NCBI GenBank assembly: GCA_964199315.1
Contig: OZ116702.1
Coordinates: forward strand, 9,114,001 to 9,178,000
DNA: 64,000 bases
Source of the DNA: Orbicella franksi
Taxonomy: Eukaryota
Reading direction: 5' to 3'
Shown: piece by piece, positions 30,250-63,824 of the stretch
How the letters are laid out: each line of letters starts with the position of its first letter
Numbering within the stretch: the first letter of the stretch is position 1
The notes under the pieces: model-generated
Told to the model about the DNA's origin: nothing
What the model saw: the letters and a program-made list of their open reading frames with translations, nothing else
Databases searched by the model: none
Program-made: the position numbers and the translations under genes

Positions 30250-32001
30250 ATGAACTTGCCAGTAGTTTGCGTTACACAATTGTTCTTTCTCATTTATCTT
30301 TGCCGTGTCACCTGTGGAAAGAAAGCTCAAATTATCTTGGAGTTCAAAACCGAAAGCGGAACTTACGAGTGGAATCGAGATGTTCTGGCAGACATTTTAA
30401 AGCTGCAGTCGCCATTGCGATCGATTTTCATTCTCGGAGATGAAAGAGGTCATACACTGGCAACACTCGATTTGATTATTCACATCTGGAGTGGAACCAG
30501 ACGAAACTACGTGGAAGAAATCTTTCGAGAAACAGACCAGAGAAACTCCGTGGTGTGGGCGCACATTTTGGAACTGCAAAGGCAGGAAAAGGAAGTAGAA
30601 AATGTACTTTTACTCTATGGGACCCATATGGATTTGGATGATGCTTTCTTCAAGTCGTCTTACGGCAGGTTTTTCGCGACAGTCTCTTCTGGTTTTAGCC
30701 TCCTCCCTCAAGAAATGCTCCAAAACAACAGCATGCCATCATTATTTCGAGGGTCAAGCCTCTTCCACAACACCGGTCACAGCGACCTAACAAAGCCCCA
30801 TGTCGTTGTAGATGCTCCGTTTGAGAGTGATTCTGAAGTGTGCCAGGATTACACAGTGGAACCCTCTGGAAAGACCATACAAGAAGCGGGGGAGTTTTTA
30901 AAGGATTATGAGAAACTGCGCAAAAGCGAGTATTGGAATGCAACGAAAAGATTAGTTGCCACCTACAGAGCGATGCCAATAATAAAGACTCCCAAAGGAA
31001 GTCGCATCGATGGTGCAGCAATCGTGGAATTGGCCACTGCAGTTAAAAAACCCATGGATGTAAATATTTATGAAAATCTGGACAGAAATATTTGCACGCG
31101 GAGCCATCAAGGACTCATCCAATCATTGATTGCATCCAAAGTGAGTGAAACAGAAGCCAAAGCTAAGAACTCCGTGGATAATTTCGCAAAGTTATGTGCT
31201 TTACGAAACGAGAACGCCGAGTTCAAAGGAGACGTGCAGCGAGTAGTAACAGAGAAAAATGAGTTGGTGAAAATAGAAAGAAATCTCGAGGAAGAGAAAC
31301 GTAGAAGAATGGAGGCGGAAAAGAGAAAGGAAGACAAGGCGAAGAAAATTCAAGAAACGCGTTCAGAAATGGAGAAAGAACATGCAAAGTTGTGCGAGTC
31401 TCGTGAAGAAGCCAAAATGGAAGTAGGAATCCAAAACGATAGATATAAAACGACTAGGAAAGAAATCAAGCTCCTTGAAAAGGACCTCAGTAAGAAAGAA
31501 GGCGGATGGCTAGATGTGATTGGGCCAGCCATATTTGGACAGAGGCCAGCTGGTGAGAAGTTTTCCAGCACACCGGAAACTGGAGGTGAAGAAGGAACCC
31601 CCCACGATCCAAATGATAGCTGGTTTAATGTTATCATACAAACTTTAACTGTTGTTAATGGCTTTGTGTCAAATGTATTGAAAATACGAGACATAATAGT
31701 GAATAGTGACGAGCGGTTGAAGCAAAATATAATAACATTACCTCGTTCTGAATACAGCATCATTGGAATCAGAGTAGTGTGTTGGGAGTGGAATGCAATC
31801 GCGGAGAAAACCTTTGGTTTTAAAGGGAATGCCTGCGGAGTGATTGCACAGGAAGTCCAAGGCCTCTATCCAAGGCTCGTGACAGAGGGGAACGATGGTT
31901 ATCTGCGTGTACAGTTTGATGCCTTGCGGGATATGATCAACGAGGCACTTACGTATAACAAGAATGCCTCTTACCCAATGTGCTTGATAGGTCATCCTTA
32001 A
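30250..32001 (+). CDS. GBP-like/S74 family copy 1: signal peptide, degenerate GBP-type GTPase, coiled coil, peptidase S74 domain
   Basis: 583-aa ORF. N-terminus MNLPVVCVTQLFFLIYLCRVTCG is signal-like. G1 is degenerate (GDERGHTLAT vs GDARIGKST in paralogs) and G3 is lost. KTPKGSRIDGAAIVELA is a GBP-like helix. S74 starts SDERLKQNI at 31705 and includes GVIAQEV..LYP..V..GNDGYLRVQF. Confidence 0.85.
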   Translation: MNLPVVCVTQLFFLIYLCRVTCGKKAQIILEFKTESGTYEWNRDVLADILKLQSPLRSIFILGDERGHTLATLDLIIHIWSGTRRNYVEEIFRETDQRNSVVWAHILELQRQEKEVENVLLLYGTHMDLDDAFFKSSYGRFFATVSSGFSLLPQEMLQNNSMPSLFRGSSLFHNTGHSDLTKPHVVVDAPFESDSEVCQDYTVEPSGKTIQEAGEFLKDYEKLRKSEYWNATKRLVATYRAMPIIKTPKGSRIDGAAIVELATAVKKPMDVNIYENLDRNICTRSHQGLIQSLIASKVSETEAKAKNSVDNFAKLCALRNENAEFKGDVQRVVTEKNELVKIERNLEEEKRRRMEAEKRKEDKAKKIQETRSEMEKEHAKLCESREEAKMEVGIQNDRYKTTRKEIKLLEKDLSKKEGGWLDVIGPAIFGQRPAGEKFSSTPETGGEEGTPHDPNDSWFNVIIQTLTVVNGFVSNVLKIRDIIVNSDERLKQNIITLPRSEYSIIGIRVVCWEWNAIAEKTFGFKGNACGVIAQEVQGLYPRLVTEGNDGYLRVQFDALRDMINEALTYNKNASYPMCLIGHP

Positions 32002-33207
32002 TTGTAGAATAAGCGTCCAGCTTCTTAAGGTGGCTCACTTGTTATTCATGCGGGCTATCACTGATTGTAGAGTAAGGTGGCTCAGTTGTAATTCCGAACG
32101 CGCTCGTCGACTGTGACTCACTTTGGAATCAAAACGTTATCGGTTTTGACTTAATGAAAGTTAACTGAACCTTCTACCATATTGTCCAGTAATGCTATCA
32201 GAGATTCAGTTTACCTACTCGGATACAACAAGCCAAGAATTCGAATCTCTGGACGGAAAAGTCCTACCAAAATTAGAACAGCTTATAGAGTGCCAAGGCA
32301 ATCGCCCCTCTTGCGAGCCGTTATAATGTGTACGCTTGCTCTGTGAACATAAAGTGCTCGAAAACCCGCGTTATTCGTAAAAGTTGCTTTTTAAATTTTG
32401 GAAAATTATCCAAGAGTTTTTAATGAAGCTCCTTCCGTGTGAATTTCAAATTGCAACAATATTTTCCAATGGACTCTTAATTCCGCTGTGAAGCATTTTA
32501 TATTGGAGAAATTGTAATCGTGATTTTAAGCTAGTGTCCTCAGGCTAACTGAAGCTGACGAGTAGTTATGAATAGGAAATTAGAACTTCCGGTAGATATT
32601 TTGAGAACTCACATCCGGCCTTTCCCTTTTTGGTGGGGGTGGGGGAGGGGGCTTGGAGGGGGAGGGTTTATCTACGCTGATGACTTCAGGAGTGGAGAGG
32701 ATGTACGCTTCATTTCTAATCATTAGGCTACCTCGCCTCCCATGATAGAAAAACGAATAGAAAGCAAGGACTAGTAGTAACATTTTATAATGAGTTTGAT
32801 GAAAACTTTGGGCGTTTTAGTAGATAACGTGTATAAATGAGAACTATAGTAATTACAGCTAATAATATTATTCTGTTTTAGATAACTCGATCAAGATTAG
32901 TGAATGTAATTTTTCCATTCATGCTTTAATTCTGTCAAGTATCATTGTAAAATATGGCTATGTAGATTTAAAATATGAGACTATCGGTTTGTTAAAATGG
33001 ATCGCATTTGAAATATTCTCGCAAAACTTAGTTCCTTTCAACAGGTCGCGCTGAGTGATTGCGTTCATTTTAAAAATCCGGTTGTTGGCCATATGAGAAA
33101 ATAGCGATATTACTTTCTTTGGGAAAATCTATTATTGCATTCTCTAGACTGGATTCTTTGGTTTCCTTGATGAACCACATGGTCCAAGTGATCTTGGATT
33201 AACCTGT

Positions 33208-63196: not shown

Positions 63197-63413
63197 TCAG
63201 TTAAGTAGTTTCAATGTAACTTTTCTCCCACTTTAGTAAGTAGACTTTCAGAGGTTTTGCATTGCGTGTAAACTTGAATCAAAACTAGAAAAAAAAAAGA
63301 CTAGTAACCAAACAAAGAAACATAATCACAGTTAACCAGCCACCTAAAAACTTAAGGATTAAAAAATGCAGTCAGAGTCAAGGGCGGGATAACAGTCACC
63401 ATTCTTTTTTTAG

Positions 63414-63824
63414 TTAACACTCCGGCACGCCTTTCTTGCTATGTCGATTGTAAATAATCTGGTGTAACACGTCATAACGCACAAGCAACCCTCTGGTAAC
63501 GGCGAATGGATACAACTTCCTTTACTTCCTGTGCGATCACACCGGGCCCCTCCCCAGTCAGTCCGAAAGTTTTCTGAGCGATTACATTCCATTCCCAGCA
63601 GCCGCCCTCGAGTCCAATTGCATTGTAAGGTGAGTGGGGTAGAGTGGTTATGTTAAACTTTAAGCCCCTGTCACTTATCGCAACACCTGCAACTACAACA
63701 GGTACGATGATATCGAGAGGTCAGCTGCTGCTTTTCTTACTTGATTGTTGCTGAAGCAACGTAATGGTTCTCAGTTGTTCTTCATGAAGTTGTTTAAGAT
63801 TCTTTTCCTTCAACTCAGCTGCTT
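63414..63824 (-). pseudogene. GBP-like/S74 family copy 7: 5'-truncated C-terminal relic closely resembling copy 3
   Basis: The reverse complement aligns by eye to about 36690-37083 (AAELKEKNLKQLHEEQLRTITLLQQ..., SDRGLK at 63673-63675). It has TGA in place of the Trp codon, a 1-nt insertion and a deletion. Similarity ends abruptly at about 63824. Confidence 0.88.

Follow-up and report, generated by a model that had tools for sequence, protein, structure and literature searches.

GBPs are central cell-autonomous immune effectors, and to our knowledge every characterized member of the GBP superfamily acts in the cytosol. The invertebrate GBPs are treated as poorly known in reviews. The S74 domain, also named the intramolecular chaperone auto-processing (ICA) domain, has its known characterized eukaryotic users in MYRF/MrfA, where a Ser-Lys dyad serves trimerization-dependent self-cleavage (PMC3742443). 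Here we describe a tandem cluster of genes from the coral Orbicella franksi, in which a GBP-like large GTPase and an S74 domain are parts of the same protein. The cluster is located in a 64,000-nucleotide stretch of the forward strand of contig OZ116702.1 (assembly GCA_964199315.1, positions 9,114,001 to 9,178,000), which is called the window below. An initial annotation of the window, made from its letters, had stated that no characterized GBP is known to carry both a signal peptide and an S74 domain. In agreement with this statement, no relevant paper was found in a literature search for GBP together with S74, endosialidase, intramolecular chaperone or cnidarians. The proteins are already in databases, under automatic names only; hence the parts are known, while no paper that was found describes their combination or the predicted location. 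We consider it fairly probable that these genes form an old and conserved tandem cluster, and that the family to which they belong, GBP-like large GTPases present across cnidarians, has entered the secretory pathway.

The family loci were located with a profile hidden Markov model (HMM) of 17 members, which was run against the six-frame translation of the whole window, and with tblastn searches of the window that used copies 3 and 4 as queries. Both searches identified the same seven loci (30250-63828) and nothing else in the window, which is exactly the number of paralogs or relics that the initial annotation had counted within 34 kb. The G+C content of the window is about 40%, the genes are intronless, and debris of retroelements and transposons is present. 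The seven copies are:

Copy 1, 30250-32001, + strand: intact 583-amino acid open reading frame (ORF) with a predicted signal peptide, a degenerate (dead) GTPase, a coiled coil, a longer linker and an S74 domain with SDERLK (S74 E 1.3e-7).
Copy 2, 33208-34623, - strand: intact 471-amino acid ORF with a predicted signal peptide, a GTPase with GDARAGKS and RD, and a coiled coil (GBP E 1.8e-6).
Copy 3, 35404-37083, + strand: intact 559-amino acid gene, counted from the first ATG, with the full layout (GBP E 4.8e-8, S74 E 8.7e-8); the reference copy.
Copy 4, 45046-46740, - strand: intact 564-amino acid gene with the full layout (GDARVGKS, RD, SDSRLK; GBP E 6.4e-10, S74 E 4.7e-9).
Copy 5, 47846-48439, + strand: relic limited to the N-terminal third, in which the P-loop is degenerate (profile HMM positions 6-171), and no Pfam match.
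Copy 6, 54288-55934, - strand: full layout (GNARVGKS, SDQNLK) with one in-frame stop (GBP E 4.2e-7).
Copy 7, 63432-63828, - strand: C-terminal fragment with the end of the coiled coil and the S74 domain (SDRGLK), in two frames with at least one frameshift.

The layout that had been proposed for all of these loci consists of a signal peptide, a GBP/atlastin-class GTPase, a coiled coil, a short hydrophobic segment and an S74 domain. It is complete in copies 1, 3, and 4, and also in copy 6 if the single in-frame stop is set aside, while copy 2 has no S74 domain, copy 5 retains the N-terminal third, and copy 7 is a C-terminal fragment; the damaged copies are 5, 6, and 7 only. The SD..LK motif of the S74 domain was located in copies 1, 3, 4, 6, and 7, with all five variants quoted in the initial annotation (SDERLK, SDRDLK, SDSRLK, SDQNLK, and SDRGLK) at the expected loci. 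The GTPase motifs fared less uniformly, as GxxRxGKS was located in copies 2, 3, 4, and 6, while copy 1 lacks GKS in its P-loop, as well as the switch-I Thr and DxEG, and the P-loop of copy 5 is degenerate. The assignment of both domains agreed with Pfam. The GBP family (PF02263) was matched above the gathering threshold by copies 2, 3, 4, and 6 (27.8-39.1 bits against a cut-off of 21.1; E 2e-6 to 6e-10) and was not matched by copies 1 and 5. Peptidase_S74 (PF13884) was matched above the gathering threshold by copies 1, 3, and 4 (32.2-36.8 bits against a cut-off of 22; E 1e-7 to 5e-9), with alignments covering positions 1-57 of 58. The named homologues of these proteins are from the stony corals Orbicella, Montipora, Oculina, Acropora, Porites, Stylophora, and Desmophyllum. 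Homologues are found on scaffolds of up to 68 Mb, and therefore the window is coral nuclear DNA. Contamination was considered and rejected, as the family members sit on megabase-scale coral scaffolds and chromosomes.

The arrangement of the domains is best followed in copy 3, which would be 564 amino acids long if it were read from an upstream TTG:

35404-35460, + strand: predicted signal peptide (MN, a 12-residue hydrophobic core, SSEG, then KP).
35470-36483, + strand: GBP-type large GTPase and helical middle domain, with the P-loop GDARIGKS from 35578, T103, DVEG, R194-Q, and Cys328/Cys363.
36484-36753, + strand: long single helix, residues 366-455, E/K/R-rich, a presumed coiled-coil stalk (secondary structure from the AlphaFold2 model).
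36787-36837, + strand: G/A/V-rich hydrophobic stretch directly preceding the catalytic Ser, a low-confidence coil in the model.
36838-37083, + strand: Peptidase S74 / ICA domain, with the SDRDLK dyad at 36838 and the Cys509/Cys527 pair.
34852-37863, + strand: probable unspliced transcription unit, covered by four collinear contigs from the Joint Genome Institute (JGI) at 99.8% identity.

The AlphaFold2 model of the copy 3 monomer, based on a 17-sequence alignment, had a mean predicted local distance difference test (pLDDT) score of 79.6. In this model the GTPase domain is followed by the helical domain, the long helix (about 90 residues, 366-455), a region of low confidence (456-483), and a small alpha/beta domain. 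When the model was compared with the PDB using Foldseek, the top matches were GBP5, GBP1, and GBP2 (E 1e-16 to 1e-14), followed by RNF112 and atlastin (E 1e-13 to 1e-12). The target-normalized template modeling (TM) scores against isolated large GTPase domains of GBPs were 0.76-0.81, and the alignments reached about 100 residues into the helical region beyond the GTPase domain. The GTPase part of copy 3 is thus, as modeled, a GBP-class large GTPase fold, as had been proposed from its motifs. Atlastin and RNF112 (ZNF179) are structural neighbors of both the GTPase and the middle domain, while their similarity to the family profile is much weaker than that of GBP2 (E 1.5e-5 for RNF112 and 0.014 for atlastin-3, against 4.7e-16 for GBP2). 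The coral family also differs from atlastin/Sey1 and RNF112 in having a single short hydrophobic stretch instead of a tandem transmembrane hairpin, and in having no RING domain.

The conservation of the GTPase motifs was counted in 69 non-redundant family members. In the G1, switch-I, and G3 regions, the first Gly of GxxRxGKS was present in all 69, the internal Arg in 65, GKS in 67-68, the switch-I Thr in 68, and the Asp and Gly of DxEG in 66 each, while the Glu of DxEG was kept in 58. The HMMER alignment placed a further conserved Arg of the family (64/69) at the Arg of the human GBP "LRD" sequence. Hence, the P-loop with an internal Arg, the switch-I Thr, DxEG, and the G4 Arg are shared with vertebrate GBPs, as are the large GTPase fold of GBP1, GBP2, and GBP5 (TM of about 0.8 on the domain), the helical extension past the GTPase domain, and the organization in multigene tandem clusters. 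The residue that follows the G4 Arg is different. It is Asp in 10 members, Gly in 32, Ser in 13, and Thr in 9, and within the window it is Asp in copies 2 and 4 (RD), Gln in copy 3 (RQ), and Thr in copy 6 (RT). The guanine-specifying Asp of the G4 (T/L)RD motif is not retained as a family feature, and "RD" cannot be kept as the shared motif that the initial annotation had listed. The loss of this guanine contact in most members suggests, as far as a sequence can indicate it, an altered nucleotide preference. The coral proteins further differ from vertebrate GBPs by their predicted signal peptide, covarying Cys pairs, C-terminal S74 domain and intronless genes, and by having no CaaX box. The GBP_C family (PF02841) was not matched by any copy in the window or any scanned family member, in contrast to the canonical GBPs recovered by the same search, which carry it.

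The S74 domain of the family has the catalytic Ser in 47 of the 48 members that carry the domain, and the Lys in 47/47. The spacing of the two residues, with four residues between them, is the same as that of S578/K583 of MYRF and of phage endosialidases (PMC3742443). These observations show that it is a bona fide S74/ICA domain, with Ser and Lys conserved wherever it is present, as the initial annotation had it. The protein ends about 80 residues past the catalytic Ser, and the domain is preceded in the monomer model by the single helix of about 90 residues. The presence of the domain would imply trimers, unlike GBPs, which dimerize and polymerize. It could be argued that S74 is retained purely for this trimerization and does not cleave, so that the mature protein keeps it, and the observation that the ICA domain of MYRF mutants drives oligomerization independently of cleavage (PMC3742443) is consistent with such a role. 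This explanation is quite unlikely in our view, since the conservation of both Ser and Lys across anthozoans and a scyphozoan, the paralog with the dead GTPase included, is hard to explain without catalysis.

To place the domain among its relatives, 1.84 billion representative proteins were searched with the family profile as a query. The matches outside the family were of two kinds. The first were canonical GBPs, which aligned to the N-terminal part of the profile only. The second were proteins of 300-500 amino acids, rich in Q/A/G and with a C-terminal S74 domain, whose alignments of about 100 bits were confined to the final 90-110 positions of the profile. Their genes lie in structural modules of P22-like phages, where genes for terminase, P22 portal, capsid, and gp10-like proteins are followed by the S74 gene. 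The coral S74 domain is 46-52% identical to these phage proteins over 81-83 residues, which is the full domain length, and the best named phages were Pseudoalteromonas virus vB_PspP-H6/1, with a "putative ejection protein," and Roseobacter phages. A Foldseek search of BFVD also returned phage "intramolecular chaperone auto-processing domain" proteins (E 5e-5 to 7e-4, about 110 columns). The similarity to known structures was weak, as the profile search of the PDB gave E 0.055 for human MYRF ICA and 0.034 for the T5 tail fiber, and the single-sequence search with the S74 part gave one marginal match, to MYRF (E 0.76).

The closest S74 domains are thus those of ejection-type proteins of P22-like marine podophages (vB_PspP-H6/1 gp17), which are likewise C-terminal, follow an elongated low-complexity or fibrous region, and have a short hydrophobic stretch of small residues just before the domain. 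Unlike the coral proteins, the phage proteins have a Q/A/G-rich upstream part and no GTPase, and they are virion components. Comparison with MYRF/MrfA showed more differences, as the coral copies have no Pfam match to an NDT80/PhoG-type DNA-binding domain, their S74 domain is terminal with no membrane span after it, and it is far closer to phage domains than to human MYRF. The origin of S74 from MYRF by domain shuffling was rejected for the last of these reasons. The simplest reading, suggested by these similarities, is that the module was captured from a marine phage independently of MYRF. In the P22-like marine phages themselves, the Q/A/G-rich protein with the C-terminal S74 domain is encoded right after the head-completion genes (L002 10001-10972, L003 10001-11377, and L009 5140-6216). 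One phage record labels it as an ejection protein, and the occurrence of S74 on an ejection-type protein is notable in itself.

The location of the proteins was examined using the leader, the cysteines and the hydrophobic stretch. The N-terminus of the family is about 23 residues longer than that of human GBPs in the HMMER alignment. Among 66 members compared, the leader has a hydrophobic core in 62, G, A, or S at position -1 in 46, and a small residue at -3 in about 49; position -2 is bulky or charged, and the predicted cleavage site is followed by charged residues. This family-wide small/bulky/small pattern looks like the signature of signal-peptidase cleavage, and not like an anchor, which agrees with the signal peptide proposed in the initial annotation. 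Two Cys pairs were followed in 159 members. Cys328 and Cys363 of the helical domain are both present in 150, both missing in 3, and single in 4, while Cys509 and Cys527, inside the S74 domain, are both present in 93, both missing in 31, and never single. Disulfide-type pairs are therefore found on each side of the hydrophobic stretch, which would place both parts of the protein in the same oxidizing compartment.

The stretch itself corresponds to the short hydrophobic segment of the proposed layout, which is indeed present, although its nature is probably different than that of a membrane span. Across the family, the catalytic Ser comes after 11-22 uncharged residues, mostly 11-16, and a similar hydrophobic stretch of small residues directly precedes the Ser of the phage relatives. 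Because the coral stretch is short, is modeled as a coil, and has a counterpart in the phage proteins, it is probably a part of the phage-type S74 module. An N-x-T sequon is located two residues past the catalytic Lys (residues 491-493 of copy 3) in 35 of the 47 S74-bearing members compared, while none was found at this place in four phage relatives that were read. Taken together, the leader, the Cys pairs, and the stretch suggest that the whole protein is lumenal or secreted; the predicted compartment would then differ from that of the S74 domain of MYRF/MrfA, which is cytosolic.

The same features bear on the possibility that the family members are type I membrane proteins, with a cleaved leader, a GTPase in the lumen or outside of the cell, a membrane span formed by the hydrophobic stretch, and a cytosolic S74 domain that releases itself. 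The order of leader, ectodomain, hydrophobic stretch and short tail is the classic one for such proteins, and in some members the Ser is preceded by 20-22 uncharged residues. We regard this topology as improbable to a similar degree as a non-cleaving S74 domain, since most stretches are too short for a bilayer, the strict covariation of the S74 Cys pair points to the same oxidizing side as that of the ectodomain, and the N-x-T sequon would be meaningful only on the lumenal side.

Several observations weigh against a secretory location. A working GTPase in the lumen or outside of cells would be odd, as the secretory lumen and the extracellular space are not known to be GTP-rich; conserved catalytic motifs next to a lost guanine-contact Asp are left unexplained. 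The call of the signal peptide is made from residue counts in 66 members, and the disulfide pairing of both Cys pairs is deduced from their covariation only. The hydrophobic stretch is modeled with low confidence, and the model, being that of a monomer, is mute on trimerization. Among distant relatives, P0154 ends in a CaaX-like CIIL, which implies a cytosolic C-terminus, and P0149 and P0187 end in hydrophobic spans of true length. The literature search found no report of GBP in nematocyst, mucus, or skeleton proteomes, and the coral and Nematostella papers that list "GBP" as differentially expressed could not be assigned to this family.

Some of these points would be met if the GTPase and the stalk were cytosolic, in a protein held by an uncleaved N-terminal signal anchor and a span before the Ser, of which only S74 would be lumenal and shed, in a manner resembling atlastin or mitofusin. 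GTP is available in the cytosol, and the characterized GBP, atlastin, and RNF112 relatives are, as far as is known, all cytosolic, with atlastin and RNF112 being structural neighbors of the coral protein. The full-length spans and the CaaX-like box of the distant relatives fit this topology as well, and the N-terminal hydrophobic core is often followed by basic residues. On the other hand, the conserved small/bulky/small pattern past a short core fits cleavage and not anchoring, and the covariation of Cys328 and Cys363 resembles that of a disulfide bond, which the cytosol would not allow to form. Most members have only 11-16 uncharged residues ahead of the Ser, and a similar stretch occurs in soluble phage proteins. 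Overall, a cytosolic GTPase appears unlikely, though it is the rival that we would take most seriously.

The distant relatives P0149, P0154, P0187, and P0189 keep the leader, the GTPase motifs, and both Cys of the helical domain, and they differ in their C-termini. One distant relative with the same leader and GTPase has a ricin-type lectin match at E 8e-4, below the Pfam cut-off; this weak match fits secretion, as the domain is typical of secreted proteins. The leader-bearing GBP-like clade may reach beyond cnidarians.

If the family is secretory, we infer the following course of events. A full member would be made with a cleavable signal peptide, enter the secretory pathway co-translationally, and lose the leader. 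The remaining part would consist of the GBP-type GTPase domain, the helical domain, the coiled-coil stalk of about 90 residues and the phage-type S74 domain at the C-terminus, and it would fold with the helical and S74 domains stapled by disulfides. In analogy to MYRF and the tail proteins of phages, S74 would join three chains through trimerization of the stalk, and the folded domain would then cut itself off at the conserved Ser by means of the Ser-Lys dyad. The product would be a trimeric GBP-like NTPase with a short hydrophobic peptide as its new C-terminus. This peptide could, again by analogy, replace the lipid tail of GBP1, GBP2, and GBP5 as the end that binds a membrane or a microbial surface, and would plausibly be the functional counterpart of the isoprenyl tail of vertebrate GBPs. 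The site of action would be lumenal or extracellular, such as mucus, the phagosome, or a different compartment of the secretory pathway, and the role would probably lie in interactions between host and microbes. The paralogs with a dead GTPase (copy 1) or without S74 (copy 2) could be its partners or regulators.

A bolder version of this proposal, which we advance tentatively and hold to be doubtful, is that these are the first dynamin-superfamily NTPases on the exoplasmic side, be it the lumen of the phagosome or symbiosome, the cnidocyst, or mucus. The phage ICA domain would trimerize the protein, cleave itself off, and unmask a hydrophobic peptide that enters microbial or vesicle membranes. 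The peptide might have been captured together with S74 from a phage ejection protein to become a substitute for the farnesyl tail, and the loss of the G4 Asp might reflect a switch to a locally available nucleotide.

The age of the cluster was estimated from the divergence of its copies and from their counterparts in other species. The window paralogs are 34-47% identical to copy 3. Six copies were compared with other corals, and for five of them counterparts were identified at about 70-99% identity, the exception being copy 4, the best matches of which are proteins of 572 amino acids at only 62%. In other species, several genes of the family are found together on one contig, and orthologs of copies 3 and 6 are located on the same 460-kb contig. 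In pairwise comparisons, the ratio of nonsynonymous to synonymous substitution rates (dN/dS) was 0.46 in copy 3 and 0.34 in copy 6; it exceeded 1 in the 21-codon leader only and was not above 0.55 in any other region. The full architecture is also present in Nematostella vectensis, where the member is named "Peptidase S74 domain-containing protein" in UniRef, in Actinia tenebrosa, and in Aurelia. Its occurrence in anthozoans and in Aurelia means that it predates the anthozoan-medusozoan split. The architecture is thus cnidarian-wide and not a local oddity, and, as stated above, its proteins are named automatically in databases and undescribed in the papers found.

These data bear on the proposal of the initial annotation that the family is rapidly turning over, and on the reading of the cluster as a decaying set of lineage-specific effectors of the venom or allorecognition type, with most of its copies being relics. 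Three of the seven loci are damaged, transposon and retroelement debris separates the copies, and dN/dS values of about 0.4 are on the relaxed side, all of which could be expected of such a cluster. The deep divergence of the paralogs, the close coral counterparts of five of the six copies tested, the recurrence of the cluster arrangement on single contigs of other species, the age of the family, and the low dN/dS outside of the leader are all opposed to it, and make rapid turnover very unlikely. Judged from these comparisons, the cluster is old and conserved.

The individual copies are consistent with this conclusion, and two that might be taken for relics, copies 1 and 2, turned out to represent conserved variant types. 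The profile HMM match of copy 1 spans positions 5-559. Full-length orthologs of copy 1, at 78-95% identity, were found in at least six other coral sequences, all of them without GKS, the switch-I Thr, and DxEG, and they keep the leader, both Cys of the helical domain, and the Ser/Lys dyad of S74. By these criteria, copy 1 is a conserved pseudo-GTPase paralog and not a relic. The ORF of copy 2 terminates in the coiled coil and has neither the hydrophobic segment nor S74. It is a conserved short type, because its best matches are equally short coral proteins without S74 (462 amino acids at 83% and 481 amino acids at 70% identity). A relic of a lost S74 domain downstream of copy 2 was considered and rejected, since the profile HMM finds none there and the orthologs are equally short. 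The orthologs of copy 3 are 86-99% identical to it in corals.

As to the damaged copies, copy 5 is 83% identical to a 193-amino acid fragment from another coral. Copy 6 is matched by the profile HMM over positions 1-562 in a single frame, which reaches the normal end apart from the one stop; its start is likely the internal ATG at 55832, and its orthologs are intact (490-526 amino acids, 70-81% identity). The match of copy 7 covers profile positions 426-561 in three pieces over two frames. At the nucleotide level, copy 7 is 85% identical to the 3′ end of copy 3 along 348 bp and dissimilar outside of them; it is, on this comparison, a recent partial duplicate of that end. The alternative, a complete gene truncated by the edge of the window, was rejected, as copy 7 ceases to resemble copy 3 at 172 bp from that edge.

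Copy 3 is probably transcribed. Four contigs from separate JGI samples match it at 99.8% identity, and are collinear with it and unspliced. Three contigs cover about 3.0 kb each, with nearly shared ends (34852 and about 37860), and the fourth, of 2.5 kb, lies within that span. The contigs with shared ends look like a 3-kb mRNA of copy 3.

If the secretory location is correct, GBP biology would be extended across the membrane by a conserved branch, found across cnidarians, that combines a secretion signal with disulfide-type Cys pairs and a phage domain capable of self-cleavage, and this branch would be the second independent use of the phage intramolecular chaperone domain in animals, after MYRF. 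It would also raise the question of which nucleotide such an enzyme uses on the lumenal or extracellular side. Coral and sea anemone immunology gains a defined, expressed gene family, in which the conserved paralogs with a dead GTPase or without S74, located in the same cluster, hint at regulatory partners.

The remaining part of the window contains a few other features. Upstream of the GBP-like cluster, an intact and intronless 690-amino acid ORF (4073-6145, + strand) encodes a TRIM-NHL-like protein with a B-box, a coiled coil, a filamin repeat, and six NHL repeats, and with no RING match. A run of 130 N, which is masked sequence or a gap, is located at 24973-25102. Between copies 6 and 7 there is a fragment of a DDE_Tnp_4 (PIF/Harbinger-type) transposase (58869-59249, + strand; E 1e-16), with a 175-amino acid coiled-coil ORF just upstream of it (58070-58597, + strand). 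Two further ORFs of about 175 amino acids, at 57264-57791 (- strand) and 60557-61096 (+ strand), have no Pfam match and are by their appearance putative pieces of a retroelement polyprotein.

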